Below are positions 2,723-57,296 of a stretch of DNA of 64,000 nucleotides, one piece after another. The DNA is from Ascoidea asiatica JCM 7603 (taxonomy: Eukaryota; Fungi; Ascomycota): positions 1,042,426 through 1,106,425 of the forward strand of contig BCKQ01000001.1 of assembly GCA_001600695.1 (NCBI GenBank). Direction: 5' to 3'. The stretch's first letter is position 1; every line of letters starts with the position of its first letter. The notes beneath the pieces are model-generated. The model made no database searches. It had not been told where the DNA came from and was given only the letters and a program-made list of their open reading frames with translations. The position numbers and the translations under genes were made by a program.

Positions 2723-3474
2723 TATATTAGATTATGTATTAGAAAATGATTATTTTGAATAATGTATCTTGTTATATAATGAATATTATAATGAATATTA
2801 TTTTTTGAATATCAATTTAAAGAAAGAAAGTAATTATTGATTGAAATTTGGAATAAAATTTGAAATGTTTAAAGAAATAGACTAGGATTTGAAATTTTTT
2901 TTAGAATAAGAAAAATAGAATATATTTATTCATTTGTTTGATGATTCTGTTAATTGAATTTTTACCTATTCTTAAAATATACTGTATAATTAATCACTGA
3001 ATTATGGTGAAGTAATTGATTCAAAGATTTATTGTTAAAAAAATAGGTATGAAAAAGTGTATATTTATTATCAAAGATTGAATCAGAGCCAAAATTAGCA
3101 CTAGATACGTACTTAGAAGGAGGCATTCGCGCGTATAACACCAGAAGAAAGCTAATTCTGAGAGGGCTGTACACCAATATTACGGGCATGGCCCACTCTT
3201 TGAATCGTCAACCTAAAGAAAAGTGTGTTAACCAGCTTTATCAACACCATAAAACAGTTAACAAAGAGTTCCAAAGGGCTCTGGGTCCTGAGCAGCGGTA
3301 TTTCGGTACAGCACCCAGTATTTCTGGACCCAGTGTACCGCTTACCAGTTTTCTTGTTCGTAAAGACCCACCTCAGCCACCAAAAATTGCAAACCACATA
3401 TCTGGCGTCAATAAAAATCTCAAAAAGCAAATTTCCCTTCCTAAAAAACACTTCAAAAATCTTGTTAGAAAACA

Positions 3475-3546
3475 GCACGCTTGGCGCAGTGGTAGCGCAG
3501 CAGATTGCAAATCTGTTGGTCCTTAGTTCGAACCTGAGAGCGAGCT
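3475..3546 (+). tRNA. tRNA-Cys (GCA), intronless, with an A3:A70 acceptor-stem mismatch
   Basis: GCACGCTTGGCGCAGTGGTAGCGCAGCAGATT-GCA-AATCTGTTGGTCCTTAGTTCGAACCTGAGAGCGAGCT; near-identical to yeast tRNA-Cys; followed by an oligo-T terminator. Confidence 0.95.
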
Positions 3547-3688
3547 TCTTTTTATATATATATATAAAGTTATATTTAATATGTGTTATTCTCTTTTTTT
3601 ATTACCATCAGGTTTTTATTTTTGAATCGATAAAGTTATAAAGATATACAAAAAAAAGATAAAATGTTAAAAGCAGAACAAAAAAGAA

Positions 3689-3761
3689 TGCCTTCAGCCT
3701 GATTCGAACAGACGATCTCCTCATTACTAGTGAGGTGCCTTACCAACTTGGCCATAAAGGC
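3689..3761 (-). tRNA. tRNA-Thr (AGT)
   Basis: Reverse complement GCCTTTATGGCCAAGTTGGTAAGGCACCTCACT-AGT-AATGAGGAGATCGTCTGTTCGAATCAGGCTGAAGGCA; all stems pair; T-run terminator follows. Confidence 0.96.
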
Positions 3762-5275
3762 TTTCCTTGTTTTTCAAAAAAGATATGCATGTAACCCTCT
3801 GTAAGCATTACTGTTTGTATAAAATTTCAAACAAAAAACACGTGGTTCGGATAAATCGATGACCAAAAATGAAAAACAAAGAAACTTTAAAAATAAAATT
3901 AGAAACGAAAACAGAAGTGAAATTAGAAGCATAAAACGAGTTTGAAAACTTACTCCTTTTTTTTCAGATCTGAGCTTTAGAAGTGCCCAGCGCTAGGGCT
4001 TAACGAGTTCTAGAAATTTAAAAAATGTGTGTTGAAGAAAGTGCTTAGAAAGGAGCTTAGGTCCCAAAGCCAAAGTCTCTTGTAGGCTTTGAGGAGGCTG
4101 AAGAACAAATGTCTAAAGTTAACTCTGGCTGTGGAATTGGGCGAGAGCAGCGAGAATAAAGAGTTGCGTTGAAACGTTACGGCACCAGAGCCCGGTGCTT
4201 GAGTGGCACGCTTGGAGGGTACCTGATTTTCCTTTAAATATGCCTCTGTTTCTTTCTTTGTCCAATTGTCATAAATCAATAATTAATCAAGAAATAATCA
4301 ATATGAAACAGAAATACAACAGAAACCTTTTGGAAATAATCTAAGGATCATAAAATTGATCCAGAGATAATCTTCGTGAGTAAGTTCTTCGATTTCTTCA
4401 ATTCCTTCACTATTTAATATTCGATTCTCTCGTAACGTGTTGTTGACCTTCTTCATCTTTTCATTATTCTCTTTTTCTTTTTTTCAAAAATTTTTATTGT
4501 ATTAAGAATACTCTTAACTTTATCCAATTTTTAAACCTAAAATATCCCAGACTTATAAATAGTAACCACCATAATTAAATCCACAAGATATTTTAAACAT
4601 TTAAAACATTTAAAAAAAAATTTGCAGATTCAAGTAATAGTAAATTATTAAAATAAAATATTAATAAATTTAAAATGATTCAATGAATTTCAGCCTGTTT
4701 GGCATTAAGAGTATTCTTTCTTGTAACGCTTCTTCTTTTTCTTCTTTTTCTGATTATTCTTTTCAATCTCATTATTCAACTACATATTGTACTGTACTTT
4801 ATAATTTTATACTTTTATTCATTCTTATTTTCTATTCATTCAATCCAATCAATTAATCAATCCATTATTCATTCAATCTGTACTCTCTTTATAATTTAGT
4901 ACCTAAAACCAATCATTGCATTGTTTTAGTATTTAACCATTTAATTAAATTTACTTTTTTAAAATAACCAAAAAACAGAAAGTTTATTTCTACTCCTGAT
5001 TTTATAAAAATAAATTACTTTTTTTAATTTATTCAACATATTATTTTAATTTTAATGAATGAAAATTTAAAATTATAAATAATAACTATTTTCTTCATTA
5101 TTTTTTTTGTCCTCTATTGAAAAATTTTCCTTAATTTATTAATTTAATTTTATTTGATTTTATATTATTTATATTATTCATATTTTTGTTTTTTAAATAC
5201 TTTTAATAAATTCCTTCATAAGTCAATTTCCATTAAATTCATCATCATCAATCAAATAAATTTAAAATTATAATA

Positions 5276-36009: not shown

Positions 36010-36451
36010 CTTGAATATTATTGATTTCCTTTGATGGACCTAATGAATCTTTTCTAATCTAAGGAATAGCAGTTTTTATGATTTTATATATCTATTTTTT
36101 TGTTTCAAAACCAAGTGTATTAATAAAAAGTAATATAATCAACCTAAATTTGAATTGAATGAACAATAGCCAGCGGATACCAGAAAATGAAGGTAAACCT
36201 TACCATGGATATTGCATTCCGTATTTTTCCTTAAAAATAAAACGTGACCATTTAAAAAACCACAAAACTGGTTTCCAAAACAGAATTCAGATAACGGAAC
36301 AAAACGGAACAATCTGCAGAGATAAGTAAAATAAATAAAAAAAAAGGATACAGAATTCTGGAGGGATTAGAGAAAAGTCCCTTTCATTTAATGCGCCACC
36401 CACAAACAGAAAAAGCAGTTTAAAAAAAAAATAATTAGTTCACTCAAAACT

Positions 36452-36997: not shown

Positions 36998-39913
36998 ATG
37001 TCTTCGAAAATTGAGAAATTATATAGGTGTTTATATTGTACAAAAACTTATAAAAGAAAAGATTATTTAACAAGACATTGTGAAAATCATAAAAAGATTA
37101 AACCATTTTATTGTGAAATATGTAATCTAGGTTTTGCAAGAAAAGATTTGTTAGAAAAGCATTTCAAATCAATAACTCATAAAAGGAAAAATTCTGTTGA
37201 AAAAGATTCAATTCTGATAAGTAACAATAATCAAATTAGCAATAATAAAGTTAACAATAATCTGAATGAAAATATAAAAAATAATACAATCGATAATACT
37301 CAATTTCCTAATCAATTAAACAATTCAATAACAAATAATTCAATTACAAGTCATAATCTTGTACCAATTTCTCCAAATATTATTATTAATCATGACAAGA
37401 ATGACACCCTAAATAATAACATAAATAATAACATAAATAATAACATAAATAATAACTTAAATCCTATAAACTCCTTAAACAACTTAAATAACCTACATAA
37501 TCCGAGTAACCTGAATCATTTAAATCACCTAAATCATCTAAATAATTCAAATAACTCAAATAATTCCAATAATTTGCCAAATTTATCCAATATCAATATA
37601 AACTCCCCTTCCAATATAGATATAGAATTAATGTTAAATTTGGATAAATTTTCAAATTTATCAAATGGTCTAGAAGATAATTATGGTTGGTTATTTGGTC
37701 AACAAGATTCAAACATAAATTTAAATTCAAATACAAATTCAAATTCAAATTCAAATCTTGCCAATTGTAATATAAATAATCACAATAACAATATCAATTA
37801 TACTAATAATATAAATAATAGTAAATATATTAATGATAACTCCTTTAACTTAAACAATGCCTTTTTACCTTCAAAAAATTCTCAAACTTCTCTTAACTCA
37901 ATTCCTTATTCAAATTCGAACTCAAATTCAACTCGTTCAGATTCTATTTCAAGCCAACAGTCCATGAATTCTGATTTTTATATTAATAATGAAAATTTTC
38001 TAATTAATGATTCAACTAGACTAAATATCTTAAATATTCTACAATTAAATTTAAATTTCAATCCAAATTTTAATTCAAACTCAAATTTAAGTCAAATAGA
38101 TTTAATTAATTTTAGAAACTACTTATCTTTATCTGATTTAAATTCATTTTTACAAATTTATTGGACTAATTTTGACCCAGTTTATCCAATAATTCATAAA
38201 CCAAGTTTTAATCCAAATTCTTCTGATGTTTACTTTATAATTTCAATTTTAACTATTGGAATGTCCTTCTCAAATCAAAATATTCACTACTTATTATCAA
38301 TTGAAATCCATAAATTTTTAAAATTAAATTTAATGTCTCAAATGGAAAAATTCCAATCTTTTGAAATTATACCTTTAGACTTAATCCAATCTATATTATT
38401 AACTAATTTTTATAATTTATTTTTAGGTAATTATTATCAACAACAATCTGTGAATTTATATAATGGTGTTGCCGTTAATCTTTTAAAAAAATTAGGTTAT
38501 TTTGATAATTTAATCGAACCTCAAATTAATGAATCATTAGTTAATACTTTACCATTATATAAATGGCAAGATTGGATAAAATTTGAAACAATAAAAAGAT
38601 CAACTTTTTTCTGTTATTTGGTTGATTGTCAATCTTCTTTTTTATTTTGTCATAGCTCTTCAAGTGATATATCTGTATTTGATATTCAATTGGAATTGCC
38701 TTGTACTGATGTTGTCTGGAATGCAAAAAACCCTCAAACTTTCTTAAAAGAGTATTTGAAACAACCAAGAGAATTACGTTCAAGAAATAAATTAAGTGTA
38801 AATGGGGGTAGATTATATTCAAGTTCTTCAAATAATGATGATCTAACTTCAAATGGTATACTAATGCCAAATGTTAGAAATGAAGGTAGATGGCCTAATT
38901 TTTTATGGAGTTTAAGAAGATTGATGCAACCGTATAAAAAAAATCAAAAAGAATATCCATTAAACTGTTTTTCTCAATTTTCAAGATTTGTCTTTTTGCA
39001 TGGTTTATTAAGTATTGTTTGTGATTTGAGAAAAAGAAATATTTTAGATTTAGGAATTGTTTCAAAAAAAAGAATGAATGAATTAGCTGCAAAAATTGAG
39101 CAATCTTTCTTGAGTTGGAGAAGTTATTTTGATACTCATATTTCTGAAACAAATGCATTTTCAGTATCTAAAAATATTCGTAAAAAAAATGATTTTAAAA
39201 TTGGAATTTTAAATGATTATGGTACATCTCCAATATTTTGGGCAAATATAACGATTTTTGAAATTGGTTTATTGGGGTTATATTGTAATATAGGGACATT
39301 GATTCAACATACAAAAAACATTCAGTTTGCATTAAAATCATCTGCAAAAAATAGCGAAATCTCAATTGAATCACCTGGAAGATTGAGATATAATGCAGTT
39401 GAAATAAATAAAAATAAGTTAATGCTAAGTAATTGGGCAAAATCTAAAGATGGATTTTGTAGTTTAATAGAAGCATGTAAGTTTTTGAGAATGGTTTTTA
39501 ATAATAAAGATATTGTTAAAACTATTGCGCATGCTCCATTTTCTGTTTATATTTCTTCAGTTATCTGCTGGCTATATGAATCTAATTTTAATTCGGAATC
39601 AATATGTAATTCAATTAAAATCAAATCCTTAGGTGAAATACAGGCGCTCTCAGGTGTTAAATCTATTGAATCTGGTGCATCAAGTTATCTAAGTCAAATT
39701 TTAGATGATCCTATTACTACTAATGGTATAGAAGATAAAGGGTCGGCATTAAAGCAGGAAAATGAATCGATTAATTCGAAAAGAGAGTTGATAGTTGAGT
39801 TAGTGTATTATTCTATAATTCATTTAGATCAATGCTCAAAGTGGGAAAACGTCAAAGGCTGCATTGCTGATCTTTACAATCTAATCTGTCAATCAAGAGG
39901 AGAAGTAATTTGA
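36998..39913 (+). CDS. C2H2 zinc-finger transcription factor with fungal-specific TF middle-homology domain
   Basis: Two fingers (CLYC...RKDYLTRH..NH; KPFYCEIC...RKDLLEKH...H), Asn-rich linker, YWTNFDPVYPIIHKPSF, WQDWIKFETIKR, LELPCTDVVWNA. Confidence 0.9.
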   Translation: MSSKIEKLYRCLYCTKTYKRKDYLTRHCENHKKIKPFYCEICNLGFARKDLLEKHFKSITHKRKNSVEKDSILISNNNQISNNKVNNNLNENIKNNTIDNTQFPNQLNNSITNNSITSHNLVPISPNIIINHDKNDTLNNNINNNINNNINNNLNPINSLNNLNNLHNPSNLNHLNHLNHLNNSNNSNNSNNLPNLSNININSPSNIDIELMLNLDKFSNLSNGLEDNYGWLFGQQDSNINLNSNTNSNSNSNLANCNINNHNNNINYTNNINNSKYINDNSFNLNNAFLPSKNSQTSLNSIPYSNSNSNSTRSDSISSQQSMNSDFYINNENFLINDSTRLNILNILQLNLNFNPNFNSNSNLSQIDLINFRNYLSLSDLNSFLQIYWTNFDPVYPIIHKPSFNPNSSDVYFIISILTIGMSFSNQNIHYLLSIEIHKFLKLNLMSQMEKFQSFEIIPLDLIQSILLTNFYNLFLGNYYQQQSVNLYNGVAVNLLKKLGYFDNLIEPQINESLVNTLPLYKWQDWIKFETIKRSTFFCYLVDCQSSFLFCHSSSSDISVFDIQLELPCTDVVWNAKNPQTFLKEYLKQPRELRSRNKLSVNGGRLYSSSSNNDDLTSNGILMPNVRNEGRWPNFLWSLRRLMQPYKKNQKEYPLNCFSQFSRFVFLHGLLSIVCDLRKRNILDLGIVSKKRMNELAAKIEQSFLSWRSYFDTHISETNAFSVSKNIRKKNDFKIGILNDYGTSPIFWANITIFEIGLLGLYCNIGTLIQHTKNIQFALKSSAKNSEISIESPGRLRYNAVEINKNKLMLSNWAKSKDGFCSLIEACKFLRMVFNNKDIVKTIAHAPFSVYISSVICWLYESNFNSESICNSIKIKSLGEIQALSGVKSIESGASSYLSQILDDPITTNGIEDKGSALKQENESINSKRELIVELVYYSIIHLDQCSKWENVKGCIADLYNLICQSRGEVI

Positions 39914-42046: not shown

Positions 42047-42795
42047 TTTTAATAATTCGTGTTATATGAATTAGATTTATATTTTATCTTGTGATCCCTT
42101 TCAAGAAAAGGAAAACGATGAAATAAAAAGAGGATCTCTTTTTTTTGCTAAAATAATGAAAAATTTAGCACCGAAGAATGCAGTGGGCAAAGACAATTCT
42201 AGAGAATGAAATAAGAATAAGAATGAAACAATGGTTGAATATAAAAGAAGGAATACTAATAAGATTAAGAAAGCTGGACAAATTAAGCATTATTTATATA
42301 TTTTTTTTCCTTAAAGTGAAGGATAAGCTTGATAAATTATAACCAACGTTACTATTATTAATGTTAATTAACAGCAGTACTATTAAAGTACATACAGTAA
42401 ATAGTTACTTCAGTAATGTGAAGGTGATTAGGTTTTTGACTAAATTCTAAAATGTACTATGAAAGTTGTACCAAGTATACTGTACCCAAACAATATCAAC
42501 AAGGTTCTTAACTACTCGAGTTTACCAAGCTCTATTTAGCTCTAATCAAGTCAGATAAATCACAGTACTTCACTACCACGCCTTTCGATAAGAATTTGAG
42601 TTGAAGAGCAGAATAAAAAATAAAATAAGAACAACTGAAGAGCTTTCAAGTGAAGATCTGAAAACGAGAAATGAAATAAATAACGTTGAATAGCATAAAT
42701 AACTCGAATAAGATACTGAATAACACGAATAACGTTAACAACTTCAATAGCCTGGACAACAACTGCAGCCAGCCGATTTTGAGCTTTTGAAGCTC

Positions 42796-42823
42796 GGTGG
42801 GCACTACAACAAGAGTGCCCACC
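42796..42823. promoter_or_regulatory. Perfect 10-bp inverted repeat GGTGGGCACT-N8-AGTGCCCACC (cluster motif pair)
   Basis: Seen directly; lies in the divergent NCS1/AKR promoter. Confidence 0.7.
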
Positions 42824-43000
42824 CAAACACAAACTCAGCAAAGAACCAACATAGCTTGAGGAAGAAGAATAGGAAAAAGCACAAGAAAAACAAAAAGCTT
42901 TAGCTGCTTCTGAAGCGCGAAAATACTTAAGAAGTGACAATAGATTACTCAATTGTTTTTCCAGTTATTTTTTCTGTTTCTGAGCTTCAATTTTGGCTGC

Positions 43001-43030
43001 GCCCACCAGAATTTGCTCGCTGGGTGGGCA
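43001..43030. promoter_or_regulatory. Second pair of cluster motifs, GCCCACC...GGTGGGCA
   Basis: GCCCACC at 43001-43007 and GGTGGGCA at 43023-43030. Confidence 0.65.
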
Positions 43031-43720
43031 CATCTTTATTTAGTCTGTTTTCCACCAAAATCTCAGAATCCAAATATTTTACTTTATTTATTTCAGTTTA
43101 GTTTTGTTTATTCTAATTTTGCTTTACCCTTTAACTTTTCTCTGATTATTCTCTTTATCTAAATCCTCAATTGGATATTCAAAGATCAAGATTTGTTTAT
43201 TTTTCCTAAGTTTTTTGGAGTTTCTGCTTATCTTTACTTCCTCAGAACCTCAAAACATAATCAAAGCGAAAAAAAAACAGACGACTATTGAATTTAACTG
43301 CTCTGTACTAAAATAAACTATTCTGCCCACCATGGTTTATTATAACTTATCACGATAACGTTAACATAATTTCTGCTTGGTTTTGTTTCAAATTTATTTA
43401 ATAACTTCTTTACCCTTTTACAATTGGTTAACTTTAGTCTCATATCAACGGATTTTAAAATCCTCTTTAATATTAACATTAAAAAAAAATTTGTTAGGCT
43501 ACTAAAATACATAATCCAAAAAAATATAAAACTATAAGAATATATACATTTTCACCCTATTTAAATTATTTAGTACTTCCTCATATATATTCATTCTTTT
43601 GACTTTATAAAAAGAAGTAATTGTTATAACTTCTTCCCATTTTTTTGCTATTCCTTTTGCTTTTAAACTACTTTTCTTAATTTTCTTTTTGAAGTATCTA
43701 AATTTTTTCAAATTATAATA

Positions 43721-44671
43721 ATGTCAGTAAAAACAATTTATACAACTCTTAATAATGGGGTTAAGATGCCTGTGTTTGGTTTAGGTACTTGGCAATCAAA
43801 GCCAAATGAAGTTTCAAAAGCTGTTGAACATGCTTTAAAAAATGGTTATAAACATATTGACACAGCTACAATTTATGGTAATGAACATGAAGTTGGTCAA
43901 GGTATTAAGAATAGTAAAATTGATAGAGATCAAATTTTTATAACAACAAAATTATGGAATTCAATGCATGATCCAAAAGATGTTCCAATCGCTTTAGAAA
44001 AAAGTTTAAAACAATTAAATTTAGATTATATTGATTTATATTTAATGCATTATCCTTGTGCAAATGATAGAACTGAATTTGAGAAAAGTGGTAATTCTAT
44101 AAAAGTTGATATTGATTATATTGATACTTGGAATGCAATGGAAAATTTATTAAAAACTGGCAAAGTTAAAGCAATTGGTATTAGTAATTTTTCACTTTCA
44201 GAATTAAAAAATTTATTAAAAAATTGTAATATTAAACCACAAGTTCATCAAATGGAAATGCATCCATATTTAAAACAAGATGATTTTTTAAAATTTCATA
44301 ATGATAATAATATTCACGTAACTGCATATTCTGCTTTCGGTAATCAAAATTCTTCATATCAACTTAATGGTGAACCAAAAATCTTACAACATCCAAAAGT
44401 TTTACAAATTTCTGAAAAACTAAATAAAACTCCTGCTCAACTTTTAGTTTCTTGGGCAATTCATAGAGGTACTTCTATTATACCAAAATCTATAACACCA
44501 AAAAGAATTGATGAAAATATTCTTGGTCAAAATTTAATTTTAAGTGATGAAGATTTTGATACTATTTCTGACTTAGGTTATTCTATAAGATATTCTGATT
44601 TTGGTCCATTTGTTGGTTATTGGTATTACTCAGATTTAGAATGTCCAGGAAAAAAGCCAAAAGAAATCTAA
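43721..44671 (+). CDS. NADPH-dependent aldo-keto reductase (Gcy1/Ypr1-like)
   Basis: GLGTW, HIDTA.IYGNE (Asp/Tyr), FITTKLWN (Lys), DLYLMHYP (His), KAIGISNF, IPKS. Confidence 0.93.
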   Translation: MSVKTIYTTLNNGVKMPVFGLGTWQSKPNEVSKAVEHALKNGYKHIDTATIYGNEHEVGQGIKNSKIDRDQIFITTKLWNSMHDPKDVPIALEKSLKQLNLDYIDLYLMHYPCANDRTEFEKSGNSIKVDIDYIDTWNAMENLLKTGKVKAIGISNFSLSELKNLLKNCNIKPQVHQMEMHPYLKQDDFLKFHNDNNIHVTAYSAFGNQNSSYQLNGEPKILQHPKVLQISEKLNKTPAQLLVSWAIHRGTSIIPKSITPKRIDENILGQNLILSDEDFDTISDLGYSIRYSDFGPFVGYWYYSDLECPGKKPKEI

Positions 44672-46038
44672 GTTAAATTATGAATTGATAAAAACAATTT
44701 TTGTATTTTTTTTTCTTAACTAAAATTTGCATCCACTTAATTCTAATTTACTTACAAAATAGATCTGAATAAATATATTCCTTTACATAGTCTCCTATTT
44801 TTTTCAAACTTAGCTGTTAAACACATTTTGAAAACCAATTGAATTTCTTTTTTTTTCTTTTCTTACACAATACGTCACAATAAATTATCATCTCCGAATA
44901 AAACATAGCGTTAGTATTCTTTAAAACCAAACTATTACTATAAAGTTTGAAACAAGTTAAAATTCGCTTCAGAAGTTATTATGTAGAGCAAATTACTACT
45001 GAATTGCAAATTTAAATGGCTGCTTTCCATAGACAGAGGTATTATTTACAATAATCCTTAGTGCACGTTTTATTTTTTAATGTCATTTTTATAGTCCATT
45101 TAACTCGGATAGCCTTGAAATTTTTGATAACCTTGATAACCTTGATATTTTTGAAAACTGTGAAAATCTTGAAAATATACTTCAAGACAATGCGCCCCAC
45201 CAAAAAGTTCTTTTAAACTTCTAAACAGCTACATCCATAAATATTTATGAAAATCAAAACAAAATATAATGGATATTTGCTGTAATTCAAGAGGATATTA
45301 TTTTTATGGCTTTACTATCCAGTAGAAAGTTGCCGATTTTCAAGTTCACCTTTCATAAAATAATTATTTCGGCTAATTCACTCTTTGGAAAAACATTATT
45401 CAAAACTTTCAGACAAAATGAAATCAAAAGAACAAAAAAAAACACAGCAATTTTTATAAAAATTGAATTAAACTTGAATTAAGTTTTTCGGTACTTTTAT
45501 GAGCCCGTTAAAATTCAGCTTTATAGTAGATAACAATTTGAAAAAACAGATTAGAGTAGCATCACTTTTATTATAAATTGCCAAAATAAGGAGCATATCT
45601 CTATTTTACTTTAAATGCAAACTTTTCTCTTCAAATTTGTACTAATAATTGAAAATCATAAAATCAGTTTGTAAACATAAAGTTAAAATTAAGATGTAAA
45701 AATGGACTTTTTGCGTTTTCTCAATTAGTGATAGAAATAAAGTAACGTTAAACGACTCGGTTGTGATTTTATATTATTGCCCTAATAAACAATATAGCCG
45801 ATTGCCTACCAATAATAGCCGATAGCCATTTGAATTGTTGGCTTGTCAAAAGAGTTAATTTTTTATACTTATAAAGTGAATAATAGTCGTATTAAAAGAT
45901 GTATTTTGAATATAAAAAGAATTACAAATATTATAATAGAGTAAAATTTAAGTGAAATAGAAAAGCAAATAGTAAAAATCAGGTAAAAGAACAAAATGGA
46001 AAGACACATACTATATAAACACAAATGAAAAATCTTTT

Positions 46039-47472
46039 TCATTTTTTAACTTGAATAACAATTTTTCCTCTAGAAGTACCACTGGAAAGCTTTGAAAAAG
46101 CCTGTTTAAAATTATGAAAATCATAAACACTATCAATAAAGATTTTTACCTTTCCTGTTTCCAACCAAGGAACACATTCATTCCAATCTGACTGGGACAG
46201 TGTGATTCTTCTGTAATTAAATATACCATTTTTACCATAAAATAACTTCCACTTTGAAAACATTTCTCTGAAAGTAACCTTTATATTAGATAAAATGAAA
46301 TCCTTTCCATTCATATTTGAAGTATTAAATTTACTATCACCGACAATGGTGACATAAAGAGAACTAGAACCTTGTGGATTAATTAGTAATTTATTAAGAT
46401 GAGGGAATAAATCACAATTACCAATAAAGTCACAAATCAAATCAAATTGCAAATTCAAAGCTAAAATTGGAGCTGAAATATCTTTATAAATTTTATAATT
46501 AATTGTATTTGAAATGTTTGAAAACCCTTTAATAAATGTTTTAGAATTTTCTGAACAAACAAGAACAATATTTTCCGGTTTAACTTTAATTACATTGATT
46601 AGCAATTGAATTGCACAAAGTCCAACAGATGTTGCACCTCCAATGATTAAAACTTTAGAATCTTCATTTAAAACTAAACCTTTGTTATTGAATAAAGTAT
46701 CACTAGCCGTTTTTAATACAACATATGCACTTCCAGCTTCATTAAACGTAATACCATTGGAATTAAAACCCGAGTTTATATCTGTATTTGATTTTAGTTT
46801 AAACTTGACGATATCTAATTTATGATCATTAAAATCAACCAAAAGATATTTTCTTAAAGATCCATTGAAGGTGAAAGGAGCTACATATCCACCACAAATG
46901 TTATCTCCAACAATGAATTTAAATTCATTTTCATCAACTTTTTTACCAATTTTTATAATTTTACCAGAAAAATCAAAACAAACTCCTTTCGGTTTACTAC
47001 CAAAAACATAAGGATTTGCAAGACCAGAAGAAACTAAATCAACTGGATTTAAACCAACTGAATAAATCTCAATTAAAATCTTATTTTCATCTTTACTTAC
47101 TAATGTCCCATCTGTATTTAGTTCAATAGTATCTTTTATTAACTCAAAACCAGAATTCCAATTTCTATAATAGATTGCTTCATTTTTCAATATAGATAAA
47201 GAATCAGTTACGGTTTCTCTAGTATTTGGTTCTGGAACAGTAGAATTTGGTAAAAATGGGTTTATAGAAGCAGAAGGAATTAAATCATTGACTGGAATAC
47301 CTTTTGTAGTACTCGAAGGAATTGAGTCAGCTGGATTACTTGGTTTTGATGTAGTAGTAGGTCCAAGAGGAGCAATCGAAGCTGTAGTATTTGAATTAGA
47401 ATTGCTTTGATCTAAAATAGGAGCAGGTGTTACTGAAGGTAAAAAAGAATTGTTTGTAACTTTATCATCCAT
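46039..47472 (-). CDS. Zn-independent MDR/quinone-reductase-like oxidoreductase (Yim1/Ast1-like) with S/T/P-rich N-terminal extension
   Basis: VGLNPVD, DFSGKI..IG, VLIIGGATSVGLCAIQL, FDLICDFIG, KVKIFIDSVY, SRGKIVI. Confidence 0.8.
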   Translation of the reverse strand: MDDKVTNNSFLPSVTPAPILDQSNSNSNTTASIAPLGPTTTSKPSNPADSIPSSTTKGIPVNDLIPSASINPFLPNSTVPEPNTRETVTDSLSILKNEAIYYRNWNSGFELIKDTIELNTDGTLVSKDENKILIEIYSVGLNPVDLVSSGLANPYVFGSKPKGVCFDFSGKIIKIGKKVDENEFKFIVGDNICGGYVAPFTFNGSLRKYLLVDFNDHKLDIVKFKLKSNTDINSGFNSNGITFNEAGSAYVVLKTASDTLFNNKGLVLNEDSKVLIIGGATSVGLCAIQLLINVIKVKPENIVLVCSENSKTFIKGFSNISNTINYKIYKDISAPILALNLQFDLICDFIGNCDLFPHLNKLLINPQGSSSLYVTIVGDSKFNTSNMNGKDFILSNIKVTFREMFSKWKLFYGKNGIFNYRRITLSQSDWNECVPWLETGKVKIFIDSVYDFHNFKQAFSKLSSGTSRGKIVIQVKK

Positions 47473-47835
47473 TATTAAAAAAGTTTAGTTATTTTAAAGC
47501 TTGAGTAATAACAATTGATCATAAAAGATCCAAAAATAAAAGAATCAAATATCTTTTTTTTAGTATAAATAACTCCTTTATTTTCTGTACTAGTATGATT
47601 CTTCCTTAAGTATTGAATATTCACCAAAACTAGAAATTAGTTTTCTAGTACTGCACTGTAGTGCGTAAGTAAGGAGTGAGGAGTATGAGGAGTGAACGAA
47701 AATGAGCAGTTCTTTATTTGTTTATGGTATCGGGTATCCGGTAATATCGGTTATATATTAATAATTTTTATTGAACATACTGTATGTAACTATTAATATG
47801 GAACAAAAGGAAATTTAAATGAGTCAAATTAATTA

Positions 47836-49322
47836 TTAACAAAGTTCTTTTTCGAGATCTTTCAAGGTTTTTGAGAATCTTTGAGCAGCTTGATCCATTT
47901 GTTCGAAAGAAGCAGAAGCAAAAGTAGCTCTAAACCCAGCGGCTTTTAATTTTTCTGAAGGTGGAACAATAAACCATCCACCTTTGGCCAATAAAACTTT
48001 ATTAGAAATTGAATTTTCATAAACTAATTCTTCTAATGTACTAGCCCATTCTTCATCAGATAAACTACTGTCAGGTTTCTTAAATTTTTCAATATTAAGG
48101 GTGATCCAAAGGAACATTCCACTTTCTGGGCAATTCCATGAACATAAATCAGTTGGTAAATATTTATCAAAAGATTTCATTAATGAGTCTCTTCTTTTAG
48201 TATAAGATAATCTTATATGTTCTAACCATTTAAAATAACCAAGTTCACCCCACTGAGATAAGGTTGAAAATAATAATAATTGAGAAATACCGGAAGCAGA
48301 TTGAATATTAACTTCATTTAATCTTATTAATTTTTCAGAAAATACAGCATTTGAAGTTATCCAACCAGTTCTTGAACCAGGCAACATAATTTTTGAGAAT
48401 GAATCTAATCTTATAACTCTACCATCAGTATCAATACTTAATATACTCGGAGTTAAGTTATCTAAAAAGTTTTGAATTGAGAATTCTTTCAAAGGTTCAC
48501 CCAATTGAAGAAAATAATAAGGGTCATCTTCAATTATTATAATATCATGAGCTTGACAAATTTTGTAAAATTCTTTTCTTCTTTCTAATGTCATTGTTGA
48601 ACCAGTTGGATTTTGACCAGTTGGCATCATATAAATAGCTTTGGGTTTTTTTAAATCTTTATATAAGGTTGACCAATTATTTAATTGGTCATCCAAATCT
48701 TTATTTATAATTCCACCTAGATCTAAAGAAACTGCAACAACTTTCAAACCTAAAGGTCTTAAAGTTTCCATTGCAGTTGGATAGGTTTGCTCTTCTAATA
48801 AAATAGTATCTCCAGGATCAGTGATAGTTCTAAGAACTGCATCTAAAGATTGAGTTGAACCTGCAGAAATTACAGAATTCCAACCTTTATAAGGAGGATT
48901 ATGAATTAATTTTGTATTATCAAAAGTCCATTTACTTAAATAAGATGAACCGAGTGCTGGACCATATTGTAAAGCTTCGTACAAAGAAGAATTTGGATCT
49001 TCACCTAAAGTTGCAGTTTTGAACTCAGTGAAATCAGATTCAACAGTTGGATATTTATATTTAATTTCAGCACATGGAAAGACAGAAGGATGTGGTAAAC
49101 CACCACCTAAAGATACAATTCCTGGAGTCTTAAGACGAGGATGCATCATTTTAAGTGCGGATGGCTAAAATTTGCAATTTAAATAGTAAAATTTTATTAG
49201 TTTCATTGAACTTATAGTAAACTAAAAGATGATATTGTGAAAATTTAAAAATTTTAGAATAAAATACATACTTTACGACCCTTTGCCTGTTTTGATAAAT
49301 ATTGTGTCCAGTCGATTTCCAT
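47836..49322 (-). CDS. PLP-dependent aromatic/2-aminoadipate aminotransferase (Aro8/Aro9-like); 2 exons (49322-49272, 49164-47836), 459 aa
   Basis: Exon 1 MEIDWTQYLSKQAKGRK joins PSALK across a GTATGT...AACTAAT...TAG intron. Motifs: SLGGGLP, ALQYG, MPTGQNPTG, IIEDDPYYFLQ, RLDSFSK (PLP Lys)..PGSRTGW. Confidence 0.9.
49165..49271 (-). other. Spliceosomal intron (107 nt) of the aminotransferase gene
   Basis: GTATGT donor at 49271, AACTAAT branch-like element, TTTTAG acceptor; phase-0 in-frame join. Confidence 0.85.
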
Positions 49323-49530
49323 TTTGAAGTATATTTAAGTGGAATATTCTTTAGTAATTTCACTAGTAAATTAACGAGAGATGATTTTTCAGATGTTGAA
49401 AAGTTTTAAAAATTACAAAAAATTAAAATAAAGTAAAATAGACAAAAATATATACGAATGAGTGAAAATATATTTAATATATAAAGCATGAATTATTTCA
49501 ATTGATCATTTTTTGATTTGAAATACTTTA

Positions 49531-49537
49531 TGAGTCA
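49531..49537. promoter_or_regulatory. Gcn4-type site TGAGTCA upstream of the aminotransferase
   Basis: Exact heptamer about 210 bp upstream of the ATG at 49322. Confidence 0.4.
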
Positions 49538-50017
49538 GTCAGTACTTTAAGATCCAGTTCGAAACTTTAGAAGTGAAACAAATGATTGGTGCAATACAAG
49601 CTAATGATAAACAATAATAATAATATCGGATGCTTTAGCCTGAGCCAGAGAGATCTGAAAAGTTTCTCAAGTGCTTTATCGTTCGGAAGTCAGAGTCGAC
49701 CACAGAAACAGACCGTTGCCAGGCCCTGCAACCCTGGACCGGCGGGTTGGCTGATTGGTTGCTTTTCTGCCGTCAACAGTTAAAAGCTTATCCGCCCACA
49801 GCAGTAAGCAGCAGTAGACTTATATAATCGATTGCGGGGTTAATATGCTTCGTTTAGGTGATCGACCCAAGTTCCTCTTCTGGAAATATATCCGCATAAA
49901 CTACAATCAATAGCTACAAAACTGCTTTTATTAATACTGTACTTTATTTTTTATATTCTTATTTTTTCTTTATAGCTTGTATTTAATATGATAAATTTGA
50001 ATAGACGTCTTTATGGA

Positions 50018-51028
50018 TTAATAAGTAGCATTTAATCTCATGTCAAGGTAGTCTTTAGCGTTAATAGGTTCATATTTCTTAGGATTTGCTTCTGAAAATG
50101 TTCCTGGAAGACAATCAACTGTAACTTCTTTGTTTGCAGAAACAAAAAAAGGAATTGAATAACGAGTTCTGGAAACTCCAGTTTCTGAATCAATTGGTGG
50201 TGCTGTTACTCTGTGTAAAGTTGATTTCAACATATCATTTGACCACCTCATTAAAAAATCTCCAGTATTAACAACCAATGATCCTGGGATATATGGCGCC
50301 GAAACGAAAGATCCTTGCTTATATGGCTCTTCAACTTGTAATCCTTCACATGAATCTTGTAATAGCATCGTTAAAGTTCCAAAGTCAGTGTGAGCAGCAA
50401 TTCTTTCTGCTTTTCCTTTTTTTAGATCTTTTTCATCTGTTGGAGGATAATGTAATAATCTTAATTGATTATCTGAATCTGAATGATAGGGAATGAAAAA
50501 TTCTTCATCTAAATTTAGCCCTAGAGCAATTGCTCTTAAAAAATGTTTAGATACATTATTAGATATTTTGAAATATTCAGTACAAAATTGCTTAAAACCA
50601 GGAATATCTTTTTCATCAGGCCAAATATTGACATATTTTGTATTATTTTCATTTCCAGAATCAAAACTTTCTTTAACATCGGGAACTTTTCTTAAATCTT
50701 GAATTTGCTCCTTATCAAAAACCATTTGTACAACTTTTTCTTTACCTATACCTGACCAACCTCTATGATGAGCGCCATTTTTAGGATGTGAACATTTTTT
50801 TTTTTGACTTTCATCTAATTCGAAAAATTTTGCACTCCATTGAAACATTAAATCACTTTTATCTTTTGGAATTCCATGATTAATAATATACATGAATCCA
50901 ACTTCTTTCATAACTCTAACCATTTCTTTACCAGTGTTTATTTTTCCTTCTTCTTCACCATCTAAAAATGGTTGAAAATCAATCACTGGAACGTGAAACT
51001 TTTGACTATACCCTTCATTTAGTGCCAT
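50018..51028 (-). CDS. Fe(II)/2-oxoglutarate dioxygenase (DIOX_N + 2OG-FeII_Oxy; isopenicillin N synthase/thymine-7-hydroxylase-like fold)
   Basis: VPVIDF, GFMYIINHGI, LRLLHYPP, HTD...H iron triad (AHTDFG; STLHRV), RYS 2OG-binding motif. Confidence 0.92.
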   Translation of the reverse strand: MALNEGYSQKFHVPVIDFQPFLDGEEEGKINTGKEMVRVMKEVGFMYIINHGIPKDKSDLMFQWSAKFFELDESQKKKCSHPKNGAHHRGWSGIGKEKVVQMVFDKEQIQDLRKVPDVKESFDSGNENNTKYVNIWPDEKDIPGFKQFCTEYFKISNNVSKHFLRAIALGLNLDEEFFIPYHSDSDNQLRLLHYPPTDEKDLKKGKAERIAAHTDFGTLTMLLQDSCEGLQVEEPYKQGSFVSAPYIPGSLVVNTGDFLMRWSNDMLKSTLHRVTAPPIDSETGVSRTRYSIPFFVSANKEVTVDCLPGTFSEANPKKYEPINAKDYLDMRLNATY

Positions 51029-51741
51029 CTTTATTTATGTTATTTATATTGAATTAATAATTTATCTGATTATTTGATTATCGGTTATTATGAAATTGAA
51101 AGAAAGCCAACAAAAAAAACAGTTTTTGTGGTTAGTTATATATAGAAAATTTTTAATGTAATTCTAAAAATATAACTTTATGTAATAGATAAACAATAAA
51201 TAAAACTAGAACAGAGGTGTAAGCAAATTAAAAAGAAAAAATATATATCGAACCATTAAATGTGTTTAACAAAAGTCAAATAGGAAAGGTTCTTCAGAAA
51301 ACGATAATTAACAATCAAATCACCCGAATAATATATCTCCTGAGTTTACTCCACCAGAAACAGAGCCTATTTTCAGGTAAATATATAAAATAGTAATTAA
51401 TCTAATTACTTTTTTATTTTATATTGTTTATTAAATACTGCACTGAAAGAACTAAAAGCTCTACAACCAAATGAGAATGAAAATAATGACACCATTAAAT
51501 TCACTTATTATTAAAATCCTGAGATGAGGACCTCAAAAAAAGTTGATTTGATCTCGTTTTCATTGAAGAGTAATTACCAACCTATTAACATTATTCTTAA
51601 TATTTTCCTTAATAATAATTATTATTATTATTATTATCAGTAACGCTATTTTATTTTATCTCCAGTTATCTTTACTCTCTTTTTAACTCTTCTTTTTTTA
51701 CTTCGACATCGGCTTCAAACCTTATGAAACAGAGGTTTTGC

Positions 51742-51765
51742 TGGTGGGCACAGACGTGGTGGGCG
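51742..51765. promoter_or_regulatory. Direct repeat of the cluster motif TGGTGGGC x2 in the divergent dioxygenase/hydantoinase promoter
   Basis: TGGTGGGCA at 51742 and TGGTGGGCG at 51757. Confidence 0.65.
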
Positions 51766-52353
51766 TGGTGGAGGAGAACAAAACTCCCAAGTCGCTGACA
51801 ATCAACAACACAATTTTGCATAGATGGATATCGATAGATGTGAATATACTAAGTCTAAAGAGATACGAATATCAGTTTATTTTGAATCCACTCACACTTA
51901 CAACTGAATCATGAATCAATCAAGTATCTTATAGAGAAGCTTTAGTCTAAGGTTATACAGGAAGTAAGAAACAAAGCAAAAAGCCAATCCTTCATAATGA
52001 TAACTCTAATTGTTGTTGAGAGAGTAAAGAGGAAAGATCAAAATTGATTATTTGCATCGATGCATAAAAATTAGAATAAATTTACTTTTTTTTGAACTTT
52101 TTGAACTTCGTTTTTAAAGGCAAGTGGAGTGGAAGCTGAAGCAACTTGTAATTTAAAGAAAAAATAAATCTTTTACTTTTAACATACTGTATATATTCAT
52201 ATAAATAATACTTTTTTTAGTCTTTTGAAATAATCTCCTGATTCAAATTTATTTAGGAAACAACACTTCATTTCAATATTATTCCTTTAATATCTAAATC
52301 TTTAGAGAATATTATATATATAAATAAATTAAAAAAAGGAAAATTGAAAAGAA

Positions 52354-55300
52354 ATGGAAAAGACAGAAAAGAAATTATTAATTGGTGTTGATGTAGGAGG
52401 AACGAATACAGATTCTGTTCTTTTAGACCCTTCTGGATTTGATAATGAACAAACAAGAGGAATTCTAGCTTGGCATAAGTCTAATACAACTCCAGATGTT
52501 TCTGATGGTATTCAATCCGCAATTTCAAGTTTATTGGATCAAGTTAAAGATGTTAAAAAATCTCAAATTTCCGCTGTTACAATTGGAACAACTCATTTCA
52601 TAAATTCAGTAATTGAACAAGATAGAGCAAGATTAGAAAAAGTTGCAGTTTTAAGATTATGTGGTCCATATTCAAGAAATATTCCTCCATTTTCTGATTT
52701 TCCAAAGGGTTTAAAAAATATATTAAATGGTTATATTGGTTATATTAATGGTGGCTATCATGTTGATGGTAATGAAATTAAAAAAATAAATGAAAATGAA
52801 ATAATTTTTCATTGTCAAAAAATTAAAGATTTAAATATTAAAACAATTGCCATTAATAGTGTTTTTGCTCCTATGAGTCCTGATCATGAATTAATTGTCC
52901 ATGATATAATTTTAAGAGAAATTCCAGACTCAAAAATAGTTATGTCGCATACAGTTTCTGGTATCGGTTATTTAGAAAGAGAAAATGCAACAATTTTAAA
53001 TGCTTCGATTGTTAGATTTGCTGAGAAAGTTATTTATTCTTTTGAAACTTCAATAATGAAAATTGGCCTAAATTGTCCAGTTATGCTTACTCAAAATGAT
53101 GGAAGTGTAATTTCAACTTCAGAAGCTTTAAAATCACCAATTAAAACATTCTCTTCCGGAGCTACAAATTCAATGAGAGGTGCTTCTTTTTTATGTTCAA
53201 ATGATAAATCAATTTACGGAAACTCTGTTATGGTTGTTGATGTTGGTGGAACTACAACTGATGTTGGACTTTTATTACCCTCAGGTTTTCCTCGTCGATC
53301 TTCTTCATATTCCATTGTTGGTGGGGTAAGAATGAATTTTTCAATGCCTCATGTTGAAAGTATTGGTTTAGGTGGTGGATCTATTGTAAGATTTGATGAT
53401 TCTAAAGCTGGTTCATTAACCGTTGGACCTGATTCGGTGGGCAATGAAGTTATAAAAAAGGCAATTGTGTTTGGCGGTAATAAAATAACTGCTTCTGATT
53501 TAACAATTTCAATTGGTTTAGATGAAGATGCAAATAATGATATTTATCAACTTGGAAATCCATCACTTGTATTAAATAAATTTTCAGATTCTATTAAGAA
53601 TAAATTTAAAACTGATATTAAATTAAAACTTGAAAAAGTAATAGATAGAATGAGGACTTCAGCTGAAGATTTACCTGTTTTACTTGTTGGTGGAGGTTCC
53701 TTCATTGTTCCAAATGAATTAGAAGGAGCTTCAAAGGTTATTAGACCTCCGTTTTTTAATGTTGCAAATGCAATTGGTGCTGCAATTGGAAAAATATCAT
53801 CAAATGTTCATCTTATAAAATTTTTACCTCCTGGAGGAGAAACAAAAGAAGAAGTGGTGGAAAAATTGAAAAAAGAGGCTTTAGATAAAGCAATTTCAAA
53901 AGGAGCTAAAGAAGATACAATAATTTTAGTTGATCTTTCTTATGAACCAATTCCATATGTTGATAATACATATCAATTTTTAGTTAAAATGGTTGGAGAT
54001 GTTGATTATTCAAAAATGAAAGAAATTTTCAAATCAAATTATAAATCTAATAAGAAGAAAATAGATTCAAATTCTTCCAAAATATCAGTTATCAAAGATT
54101 CTAGTTTTAAAGATGAAAAAATTTCAGAAGAAACTAAAGAAATTGACTACTCCATATATAAGCCGATAATTAATAGTGAAAAAGAATGGCTATTAAGTGA
54201 ATTAGATTTAGAATTTATTTCAATAGGTTGTTATATTCTAGGATCGGGTGGAGGAGGAAATCCATATTCTTCATATTTACATATTAGAAATTTGCTAAGA
54301 AATGGAGATATTATAAAAATTATTGATGTTGAAAATATTTATAAATATACGAAAGGTAAAGCTAGTATAATTTCAGTTGGATATGCAGGATCACCTACAG
54401 TTTCTCATGAACAATTAAAAGGTGATGAATTATTAGTTTGCCATGAATATATGTCAAGGTTTCATGGAGGAAGTATGGATTTAGTATTTCCACTAGAAAT
54501 TGGAGGATCCAATGGATTAACAGGATTTGAATTAGGATGTTCATCACAGTTGAATGTACCTATAGTTGATTGTGATTTTATGGGTAGAGCATATCCAACA
54601 CATTGGCAAACATTACCAGTTGTTTATCAAGAAGAAGGAACATGTTTTTATGCACCAACAGTTATGAGTAATGGAAATGGGAATACTATAATATTTGCGG
54701 AATCTAAAAGTGATTTATTATTAGAATTAACTATGAGAGCATCATTGTCAGAATTTGGAGCAACAGCCGGAGTAATGAATCCTCCAATGAAAAGTGAAGA
54801 AATGGATTTGAAAAGTATTCATAGATCAATTTCATTAGCTTGGAGAATTGGTAGAGGAGTTTTAATAGCTAGACAAAAAAGTGAGATTGATAAGATTGGA
54901 GAAAGAATTTTAGAATCAGTTAATAATAATGGAAAATTAATATTTTCAGGTAAAATTATTGGAGTTGAAAGAAAATTAATCAAAGGACATAGTTATGGAG
55001 AAGTTATAATTGAAGAAATTGAAGGTATTAAAGGAAATAAAAAAAAATTGAGAATTCCATTTAAAAATGAAAATATATATTGTGAATTAGAAGATTTTGA
55101 TGGTACAAATAAAGAAATAATTTGTTCAGTTCCAGATTTAATTTCAGTTATTGATGCCGATACTGGAGAAGCAGTTGGAACGCCAGATTATAGATACGGA
55201 TTATTAGTTTTTGTTCTCGGAATTGCACCTAGTAATAAATGGACAGATAGTGAAAAGGCATTAAGTATTGGAGGGCCAAAAGGATTTAAATTTGATGAAA

Positions 55301-55377
55301 TTGAATATAAGCCAATTAGTAAATACAGTAAACCTAAATCGGTTATTGAAGAGTATTATAAAGAAACTGGGTTTTAA
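52354..55377 (+). CDS. Hydantoinase/oxoprolinase-A domain fused to a C-terminal DUF917 domain
   Basis: IGVDVGGTNTD, IGTTHFIN, LERENATILNA, TFSSGATNSMRGA, VVDVGGTTTD, SIGLGGGS, VANAIGAA; then GCYILGSGGGG, GSPTV..E, EIGGSNG, DCDFMGRAYP, FKNEN, VPDLI, YRYGL. Confidence 0.88.
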   Translation: MEKTEKKLLIGVDVGGTNTDSVLLDPSGFDNEQTRGILAWHKSNTTPDVSDGIQSAISSLLDQVKDVKKSQISAVTIGTTHFINSVIEQDRARLEKVAVLRLCGPYSRNIPPFSDFPKGLKNILNGYIGYINGGYHVDGNEIKKINENEIIFHCQKIKDLNIKTIAINSVFAPMSPDHELIVHDIILREIPDSKIVMSHTVSGIGYLERENATILNASIVRFAEKVIYSFETSIMKIGLNCPVMLTQNDGSVISTSEALKSPIKTFSSGATNSMRGASFLCSNDKSIYGNSVMVVDVGGTTTDVGLLLPSGFPRRSSSYSIVGGVRMNFSMPHVESIGLGGGSIVRFDDSKAGSLTVGPDSVGNEVIKKAIVFGGNKITASDLTISIGLDEDANNDIYQLGNPSLVLNKFSDSIKNKFKTDIKLKLEKVIDRMRTSAEDLPVLLVGGGSFIVPNELEGASKVIRPPFFNVANAIGAAIGKISSNVHLIKFLPPGGETKEEVVEKLKKEALDKAISKGAKEDTIILVDLSYEPIPYVDNTYQFLVKMVGDVDYSKMKEIFKSNYKSNKKKIDSNSSKISVIKDSSFKDEKISEETKEIDYSIYKPIINSEKEWLLSELDLEFISIGCYILGSGGGGNPYSSYLHIRNLLRNGDIIKIIDVENIYKYTKGKASIISVGYAGSPTVSHEQLKGDELLVCHEYMSRFHGGSMDLVFPLEIGGSNGLTGFELGCSSQLNVPIVDCDFMGRAYPTHWQTLPVVYQEEGTCFYAPTVMSNGNGNTIIFAESKSDLLLELTMRASLSEFGATAGVMNPPMKSEEMDLKSIHRSISLAWRIGRGVLIARQKSEIDKIGERILESVNNNGKLIFSGKIIGVERKLIKGHSYGEVIIEEIEGIKGNKKKLRIPFKNENIYCELEDFDGTNKEIICSVPDLISVIDADTGEAVGTPDYRYGLLVFVLGIAPSNKWTDSEKALSIGGPKGFKFDEIEYKPISKYSKPKSVIEEYYKETGF

Positions 55378-57296
55378 TAATAATAATAATAATAATGATA
55401 ATAAAAAATTGGATGATTATTTAATAATTATTTTAAATATTATTATCAAATATATTATAAATAAATTACAATTAAATCAAAGACATTGATGTAATTAATA
55501 ATAATTTAGACTTTTTGGGAATAATATTCGGAGACCAATATCTTGGTTCTTTTAAACCTCTCCAGGATTATGTACTTCTATGTATTTTAAATACCGACCC
55601 ACTTTTGAAGGTAAATTTTCAAAAAGTGCAATGCTTTAGCTTGTGGGACGCTCCAAAAAGGGATTACAATATACAGTGTAAGCCATGTAAAGGGATTGTG
55701 AACATGGTACTTTTAATTTGAAGAAAAGGATAAAAGAATAATTTAGGCAATTATTGACTTTGAATTGAAGAATTGAGTCAAGAACAAGTTTTTGAACAAT
55801 AGATTGTGAAAAACAAGTGAACCAAAAGGTAGACATTTAACAATGGATCGATAATGTAGATCAGAAACTGGTTTGAATCAGGTTTTTTTCCCAATGCAAA
55901 TAGGGATTTTGACAATAAACAAAATATAAATTTGATTGACTGAACTTTGACTTTTTTCTCGACAACAATGGTATTTCACAGCTTGGAATTGTAAAATACC
56001 AATTATTGTTGTTTTCAGAAATAATAAACTCTCCAAAAGCCAATTAAAACCAATTGAAAGTGGAGGTATGAAATCTGACTCTAGATAATGAGCATGTAGT
56101 GAGAACTTATTAATTATTAAATGACAGAAGAATAATTACGATACACCCAACTTTTTGTGTATGGAAAAAGAATAACTCAGAGAAATACAATTTAGGACAG
56201 AATAGGAAAATTGATTGGACAAACATAGCAAACAGTAACTCTGGTGAGACTGAAAGAAACACAAAATAAGATTCTCGCAGGACAGAAACTCAGCCAGTAT
56301 ACGAAAGATTCAAAGATAAAAGGTTACCCGGCTGAAAGCATATTTTTTCAGACAGTGAATAAATTCGTATCCTGCACTTTGCCGATATCGTCCCATTTTC
56401 TGGACGCGCTGTGCAGCCAGGCAGTTTTTGTTATTCTTGGGCCGTGGGGCACCTATAATTCGCGGAAATTAAAAATCCGCGGTGGAAATACGCTCTATGA
56501 TTGGCCAGAATAAAGTCTGCTGCAGCACTTTTTGTTTTTCACTTTTCATTTTTCACGTTGACGGCGATGCTCCAACTTGATTTCTTTTTACTTTTTACGT
56601 GTTTTTCTTAATTGATTTTGAATTTGGTTATTGTGGATTGGGATCCCGAAGACTTGGCTCAGGCAAATAGCATAAAGGAGTCGCTTAGGCCCTCCCCATG
56701 TGTTCTCTCCTCCCAGAATCTGTGTCACGGGAAAGGGCTAGCCTGCTGGCTGTAACTTGATCTAGGTCGCACAGTGGCCGATCTACAGCACTTTGTATTG
56801 AAACAAAGGGTTAACTATGGTTAACTATGGATTAATACAACGAGCTGTTCTGGGTGTTACCTGGGATGTTTCCTTTAGCTTTGTGTATCACGCCTGCCCT
56901 AGGAGCATCTCTGCCTGTCCTGGATCTGTGGGTCTTTGCGTGTCTGTTCTGCTTTACCGCAGCGCTATCTGCCTGTGCACCCACACCTATAACCCTTCCA
57001 GACCCACCAAACCCACCAGTCTCCCAAACTCCCACCAAAATCAAGCCCGAATTCTACTCAGGGCTTCTTTCCAAAGTGATTGTGAATAGTTTTGTGAATA
57101 TTTGTGAATAAATTCTGAATTCTGAATTTTGAATCAACTGTTGAATTAGCTGTTAATTAAGTATGAATTGACTGTGATGAATTAAGTGTGAATTTTTAAA
57201 TTGTTTTAAACTTACTAGGAAAATCTTTTTAAATAGAAACATCTTTTTTAAATCTTGAAACCAGGTTTATCTTAAATCAAAAGAAAGCTCATTGAA

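Follow-up and report, generated by a model that had tools for sequence, protein, structure and literature searches.

Which protein reads a rare GC-rich word that recurs in the promoters of a gene cluster is the question raised by a stretch of 64,000 nucleotides from the yeast Ascoidea asiatica JCM 7603 (contig BCKQ01000001.1, positions 1,042,426 to 1,106,425 of the forward strand), hereafter the window. The cluster, for the breakdown of a nitrogen compound, is undescribed as far as literature searches go, and these found no description of the motif either. By a Pfam scan, which was used to assign all gene families in the window, its presumed target genes encode an NCS1-family permease (PF02133; 40385-42046, minus strand), an aldo/keto reductase (AKR; 43721-44671, plus strand), a 2-oxoglutarate (2OG)-Fe(II) dioxygenase with DIOX_N and 2OG-FeII_Oxy domains (50018-51028, minus strand), and a fusion of hydantoinase-A and DUF917 (S-Me-THD-like; 52354-55377, plus strand). 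The candidate regulator is a transcription factor (TF; 36998-39913, plus strand) that joins C2H2 zinc fingers to a Fungal_trans domain (PF04082).

A first-pass annotation of the window had proposed that a pathway-specific regulator binds the word GCCCACC, or GGTGGGC on the opposite strand, the adjacent C2H2 protein being the simplest candidate. GGTGGGC (site A) and its sister form GGTGGAG (site B) are a real, conserved, and cluster-specific cis-element, which is almost certainly functional. The cluster elements are probably upstream activating sites, and the protein that would bind them is most likely the cluster-encoded C2H2-Fungal_trans TF. This is the best-supported reading, as enrichment, cluster specificity, conservation across species, co-location of the TF, and invariant contact residues were all observed; physical binding, activation rather than repression, and an inducer are presumed in it.

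Occurrence of the element in the window and the genome

On both strands together, the window contains eight copies of site A, whereas 100 dinucleotide-preserving shuffles gave 0.64 on average and four at most. Five of the eight copies lie in the 1.67-kb divergent intergenic region between the NCS1 and AKR genes, two in the divergent promoter of the dioxygenase and hydantoinase genes, and one, probably incidental, within the hydantoinase coding sequence (53436-53442, minus strand). Four copies in the NCS1/AKR promoter form two inverted pairs. Thus, the sites at 42796 (plus strand) and 42817 (minus strand) extend into the arms of a perfect 10-bp inverted repeat, GGTGGGCACT / AGTGCCCACC, at 42796-42805 and 42814-42823, and those at 43001-43007 (minus strand) and 43023-43029 (plus strand) stand 22 bp apart; the fifth copy (43325-43331, minus strand) is located ~390 bp upstream of the AKR start codon. 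In the dioxygenase/hydantoinase promoter, two sites A (51743-51749 and 51758-51764, plus strand) and the site B that directly follows them (51767-51773, plus strand) make up a direct triplet, and a further site B (51349-51355, minus strand) is found ~320 bp upstream of the dioxygenase start codon.

The seven promoter positions of the exact word given in the first-pass annotation were all confirmed, as were the perfect inverted repeat and the copy in the hydantoinase gene, previously placed at about 53437; the two site B copies were absent from its list. The GCCCAC core reported at 3191, 42183, and 49794 is also present. The second of these (42183-42188, plus strand), which reads GTGGGC with A instead of G on its 5' side, lies 137 bp upstream of the NCS1 start, and the third (49794-49799, minus strand), upstream of an aminotransferase gene, abuts a CTTATC GATA site as had been stated; both are weak candidate sites.

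The GC content of the window is 21-33% per 2 kb, and the caveat had been raised that GC islands in promoters increase the expected number of copies. This does not explain the count, since under local composition 0.016 copies of site A are expected at 42750-43350, where five are seen, and 0.022 at 51700-51800, where two are seen, and 13 other GC-rich stretches of the window (at least 40% GC) contain no copy of GGTGGGC or GGTGGAG. Nor are the copies duplicates of one another, because their flanking sequences differ. What speaks for a recurrence by chance, by GC-rich promoter islands, or by local duplication is the genome-wide frequency, as the 20.3-Mb AT-rich assembly (71 contigs) contains 204 copies of GGTGGGC and 145 of the reversed word taken as control, which is about the chance rate. 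Genome-wide, the word itself is not unusually frequent, whereas inverted pairs of site A within 60 nt occur in the NCS1/AKR promoter only. Direct pairs of site A are found only in the dioxygenase/hydantoinase promoter and at one locus on contig 7 that is poor in open reading frames (ORFs). Moreover, the same words occur independently in the cluster promoters of seven other species. By the eight-species scan described below, the promoter specificity, and the local-composition test, an origin by chance, GC islands, or duplication is effectively refuted and retains hardly any probability.

The contig 7 locus (L001, G000:C7:137400-147399) contains three copies of GGTGGGC at 4996, 5009, and 5954, the first two 13 bp apart, in a stretch of ~7 kb with several GC-rich islands and without any ORF of at least 120 amino acids, and no nearby gene accounts for the three copies. 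Pairs of A and B outside the cluster precede the genes for a PDK/BCKDK-like kinase and for a proteasome subunit, or fall in the shared upstream region of divergent genes for a DEAD-box helicase and a Zn2Cys6 TF. They were considered as further members of the regulon and rejected, because their number is about that predicted by chance. No site lies upstream of any of three NCS1 paralogues encoded elsewhere in the genome.

Conservation and specificity across species

Contigs encoding homologues of the hydantoinase fusion and of the TF served as comparison loci. The cluster gene families and the TF occur together in Kuraishia capsulata, Ogataea haglerorum, O. philodendri, Brettanomyces nanus, Scheffersomyces coipomensis, and Priceomyces carsonii, the shared content being the C2H2 and Fungal_trans TF, the NCS1 permease, the AKR, the 2OG dioxygenase, the hydantoinase-A/DUF917 fusion, and sometimes an aminotransferase. 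In Pachysolen (L008), the cluster is partial, with the hydantoinase gene and no TF gene in the locus. The TF gene adjoins cluster genes in seven of the eight loci of the motif scan; by locus, it is adjacent to them in the window and in L005, L006, L007, L010, L011, L012, and L014, and not in L008.

All 7-mers in the cluster promoters of eight yeasts (the window and seven others) were scanned against an order-1 Markov background. GGTGGGC ranks first, with 28 copies observed, 0.84 expected, and six species represented, followed by GGTGGAG with 21 observed, 1.12 expected, and seven species, and both words keep their ranks without the window. Taken singly, every species reaches significance, with P from 2e-3 to 3e-14. 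The 6-mer GATAAG is also enriched in the cluster promoters (34 observed, 11.8 expected, seven species), and apart from GATA sites and A/T runs the eight-species scan found no other specific word. Taken together, sites A and B number 49 in 20.0 kb of cluster promoters, as opposed to a single site in the 50.1 kb of intergenic DNA that these loci have besides. The 153.6 kb of coding DNA contains 44. Thus, the conservation in orthologous promoters that the first-pass annotation had proposed to examine does extend to the cluster promoters of all seven other yeasts, and the words are not equally frequent in the other intergenic DNA of these loci.

The last two bases are GC or AG in all 49 sites, and GG and AC do not occur. 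A T is preferred directly 5' of the GGTGG core in both forms, much more strongly in B, and the consensus is approximately (T)GGTGG followed by GC or AG and then by a purine; the word GCCCACC, as originally put forward, is therefore real but too narrow a description. The balance of the two forms varies between species, with eight GGTGGGC copies in the cluster intergenic regions of K. capsulata (8 A, 1 B) and none in those of B. nanus (0 A, 5 B). The cluster promoters of B. nanus and S. coipomensis have no exact GGTGGGC, and the one- or two-base variant GGTGGAG recurs there. In Ogataea and Kuraishia, sites A and B are often 27-37 bp apart. The presence of sites in both orientations, together with their conservation across distant lineages, points to a protein-binding site acting at the level of DNA.

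Such a core could also recall known general factors, namely Rpn4, whose PACE site is GGTGGCAAA, or a repressor of the Mig1/CreA type. GTGGAG fits the CreA consensus, SYGGRG. The motif and PACE have GGTGG in common, each being bound, or proposed to be bound, by a C2H2 protein, and one of the A and B pairs outside the cluster is the one upstream of a proteasome subunit gene. The Mig1 site, for its part, is SYGGGG (PMC3897899). However, sites of a general factor would not be confined to cluster promoters as these are, which makes this explanation very improbable, and both candidates were rejected on more particular grounds. The cluster motif differs from PACE in having an extra G or A and no AAA tail, and the 86 genomic copies of PACE (43 for the reversed control) include none in the cluster and none in the interval from C1:880789 to C1:1364369, which includes the window. 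For Mig1/CreA, none of the 49 sites reads GGTGGGG, and both the fixed GGT prefix and the GGC form are a misfit. The excess of PACE over its control suggests a conserved proteasome regulon in this genome; one proteasome subunit promoter (L023, 4291-4310) has GGTGGAG and GGTGGGC 13 bp apart instead of PACE.

The candidate regulator and its reading of the site

The TF encoded at 36998-39913 contains a Fungal_trans domain at residues 385-666 (E 2.5e-29) and a zf-C2H2 match at residues 37-58, and both N-terminal fingers are visible in the translation, with the helices RKDYLTR and RKDLLEK that had been singled out at first sight. An Asn-rich, low-complexity insert of ~300 residues (about 70-370) separates the fingers from the Fungal_trans domain, and orthologues of 708-807 residues have no such insert. 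In nine orthologues, 31-36% identical to the window TF, residues R20, D22, Y23, R26, R48, D50, and K54 are invariant. Positions -1, +2, +3, and +6 of finger 1 are thus always R-D-Y-R, and in finger 2 positions -1, +2, and +6 are always R, D, and K, with L or I at +3.

A profile search for the TF family covered 1.84 billion representatives. All 21 strong family members examined carry the RDYR/RDLK-type signature; finger 1 reads REYR in one of them, and finger 2 has I in place of L in some. The weaker relatives examined have mostly R-(D/E)-H-R / R-D-L-R and a few other combinations, some of them with Tyr at +3 of finger 1. Ten family members that were looked up are budding-yeast proteins with generic names or unnamed sequences from read assemblies or metagenomes. 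The signature reaches sampled yeasts as distant as Lipomyces and Tortispora, and no other protein that carries it was found in the genome of the window.

In the canonical zinc-finger code, GTG is specified by finger 2 (Lys +6, Leu +3, Arg -1) and G-N-G by finger 1 (Arg +6, Tyr +3, Arg -1), so that the predicted site of the two fingers is GTGGNG. The prediction fits GTGGAG of site B fully and GTGGGC of site A at five of six positions.

The proposed mechanism can be outlined as follows. The uncharacterised TF, which combines a Fungal_trans domain with fingers related to those of Adr1, would bind both forms, TGGTGGGCA and TGGTGGAGA, through its two N-terminal C2H2 fingers (~residues 1-70). The several sites in the two divergent promoters, which form a direct triplet and inverted pairs with a spacing of 21-22 bp, would recruit several TF molecules, which would switch on the NCS1, AKR, dioxygenase, and hydantoinase-DUF917 genes together, and the co-enriched GATA sites would add nitrogen control.

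Some observations weigh against this assignment. In GTGGGC, the more frequent form, the last base is C, whereas the expected preference of Arg -1 of finger 1 is for G. Endings are strictly divided between GGC and GAG, with neither GGG nor GAC among them, which could reflect two modes of binding or a pair of proteins. GAG is the sole form in B. nanus and S. coipomensis, whose contact residues are identical to those of species that have mainly GGC. Two copies of site A stand upstream of the Pachysolen hydantoinase gene, though that locus lacks the TF. In the window, moreover, the promoter of the MDR-type dehydrogenase gene has no site A or B, and the aminotransferase promoter has the core-only copy alone.

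Several of these features would be expected if two factors were at work, with the cluster TF binding GGTGGAG alone and a different, unlinked protein binding GGTGGGC. The last two bases are never mixed, the canonical code suits GAG and not GGC, some species have B only and Pachysolen A only, and the spacing of A and B in Ogataea and Kuraishia resembles that of a composite element. However, unrelated proteins are unlikely to have in common a 5-bp GGTGG core and a preference for a 5' T, and the search of this genome yielded no second protein with these finger residues. Furthermore, the finger-1 helix is RRDYLQR in both K. capsulata and B. nanus, although the two species use opposite forms of the site, which fits site turnover under one factor better. 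A division of labour between two proteins is therefore unlikely.

Binding of both forms by the cluster TF can be extended into a more detailed proposal, which may as readily prove wrong as right. One Adr1-related family of C2H2-Fungal_trans activators, with the invariant residues R-D-Y-R / R-D-L-K, would read TGGTGGGC and TGGTGGAG by two docking modes of finger 1 and, with GATA factors, would drive an uncharacterised catabolic cluster for an N-heterocycle, composed of the NCS1 importer, the 2OG dioxygenase, the hydantoinase-A/DUF917 protein, and the AKR, as a regulon shared by several budding-yeast lineages.

A third arrangement would leave the cis-element as it is and assign it to an unlinked regulator, with the cluster TF recognising another sequence. 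The family member stands apart from the cluster genes in Tortispora and Lipomyces, so that the TF and the cluster are separable. On the other hand, the cluster promoters offer no other enriched word, apart from GATA sites and A/T runs, that this TF might recognise instead, its predicted specificity overlaps the motif, and the motif also occurs beside family members with different neighbours. Thus, this arrangement is improbable, somewhat more so than a pair of factors. In L012 (4841-5674), a TF with the same signature lies beside a sugar transporter and NCS1 gene, and in L013 (14432-16472) another lies beside a sulfatase and an MFS transporter gene, each with three motif copies in the adjacent promoter. 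The motif thus follows the TF, and the family may control different sets of transporters and enzymes in different yeasts. The locus of a Candida boidinii hydantoinase homologue (L009), an informal negative case, has neither the TF nor any site.

The related word GGGTGGCG occurs at 36396 and 36563, in the upstream region of the TF gene itself. GGTGGC-like words also precede the TF gene of K. capsulata and that of O. haglerorum, and GGTGGC was not prominent in the k-mer scan. These words may be weak autoregulatory sites.

Comparison with known regulators

To our knowledge, pathway-specific regulators in fungi are nearly always Zn2Cys6 proteins, and C2H2 examples such as HxnR are rare. Judged by architecture and cluster setting, HxnR of Aspergillus nidulans is the nearest analogue of the window TF. 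Its gene belongs to a nitrogen-heterocycle cluster, the hxn regulon, which is under co-control by the GATA factor AreA, and its authors call a pathway-specific C2H2 regulator of this kind unusual in fungi (PMC5746545, PMC8478523). Both proteins have two N-terminal C2H2 fingers and PF04082 in ~700-970 residues, each gene lies within a catabolic cluster that has divergent promoters, and both sets of promoters combine G-rich candidate TF sites, in the window a shared motif, with GATA (AreA-type) sites. The DIOX_N and 2OG-FeII_Oxy composition of the window dioxygenase is HxnY-like. However, the window cluster differs from hxn in its NCS1, AKR, and hydantoinase-A/DUF917 genes and has no genes of the hxnS, T, V, X, W, M, or N types. 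The HxnR site is known only as a computer prediction, GHGGGG or GNGGDG (PMC8478523, PMC5746545), whereas the motif described here derives from enrichment across species, and its commoner form, GTGGGC, does not fit the HxnR prediction.

Adr1 of Saccharomyces cerevisiae provides the nearest comparison for the fingers, since the finger domain of the window TF matches the nuclear magnetic resonance structure of Adr1, 2ADR (E 1.2e-10). Adr1 is of the R-E-H-R / R-D-L-R contact type, and in UAS1 of ADH2 its half-sites form inverted pairs about two helical turns apart. Inverted half-site pairs are thus common to Adr1 and the cluster, and so is a TGG(A/G) core. In contrast, neither the window TF, with R-D-Y-R / R-D-L-K, nor any of the 21 strong family members carries the Adr1-type signature, and the window TF differs further in its Fungal_trans domain and in having a single gene cluster as its proposed targets. 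The Adr1 site is TTGGRG (PMC3897899), whereas all 49 cluster sites have G and not T as the first base of the hexamer, and the commoner form ends in GC. Differences in contact residues from the Adr1-like relatives could explain the presence of GTGG(A/G) instead of TTGG(A/G)G.

If the more detailed proposal outlined above is correct, fungi would have, after HxnR, a second C2H2 protein that regulates its own pathway cluster, and the first for which the site is comparatively defined. Across several budding-yeast lineages, a motif and a conserved target cluster coincide with a regulator family of fixed signature, and the motif offers a means of defining the regulon and of tracing the inducing substrate of an uncharacterised catabolic cluster. 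Moreover, how a zinc finger with Tyr at position +3 of its helix would recognise two strictly alternative forms of the site is a small puzzle.

Other genes and features of the loci

Between the AKR and dioxygenase genes, the window encodes the MDR-type dehydrogenase (46039-47472, minus strand) and a class I/II aminotransferase (47836-49149, minus strand), the latter also present in the Kuraishia cluster. The hydantoinase-A/DUF917 fusion is a single-copy gene in the genome, and its best protein match is 60% identical. Genes of the window are largely intron-free, and their best protein matches are from Saccharomycotina. The K. capsulata cluster (L005) has as extra neighbours an Amidohydro_1 gene, a PNP_UDP_1 gene, and a second dioxygenase gene, and the Ogataea clusters (L006 and L014) have an adenosine/AMP deaminase family gene, an SSF symporter gene, a proline-racemase-like gene, and an MFS gene. 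These extra neighbours hint at a nucleobase or another N-heterocycle as the substrate.

A 900-bp island of 44% GC (56251-57150) lies in a gene-free stretch of the window (~55.4-58.2 kb) with short overlapping ORFs only. It has no Rfam match and no copy of the motif, and it may be a non-coding RNA gene or a large promoter. Genes for tRNA-Cys (GCA) and tRNA-Thr (AGT) are located on opposite strands at 3474-3761, near the GCCCAC core at 3191. Divergent from the cluster TF, at 33010-36009 on the minus strand, there is an intact ORF of 999 amino acids with a DDE_1 domain of the pogo/Fot1-type transposases.

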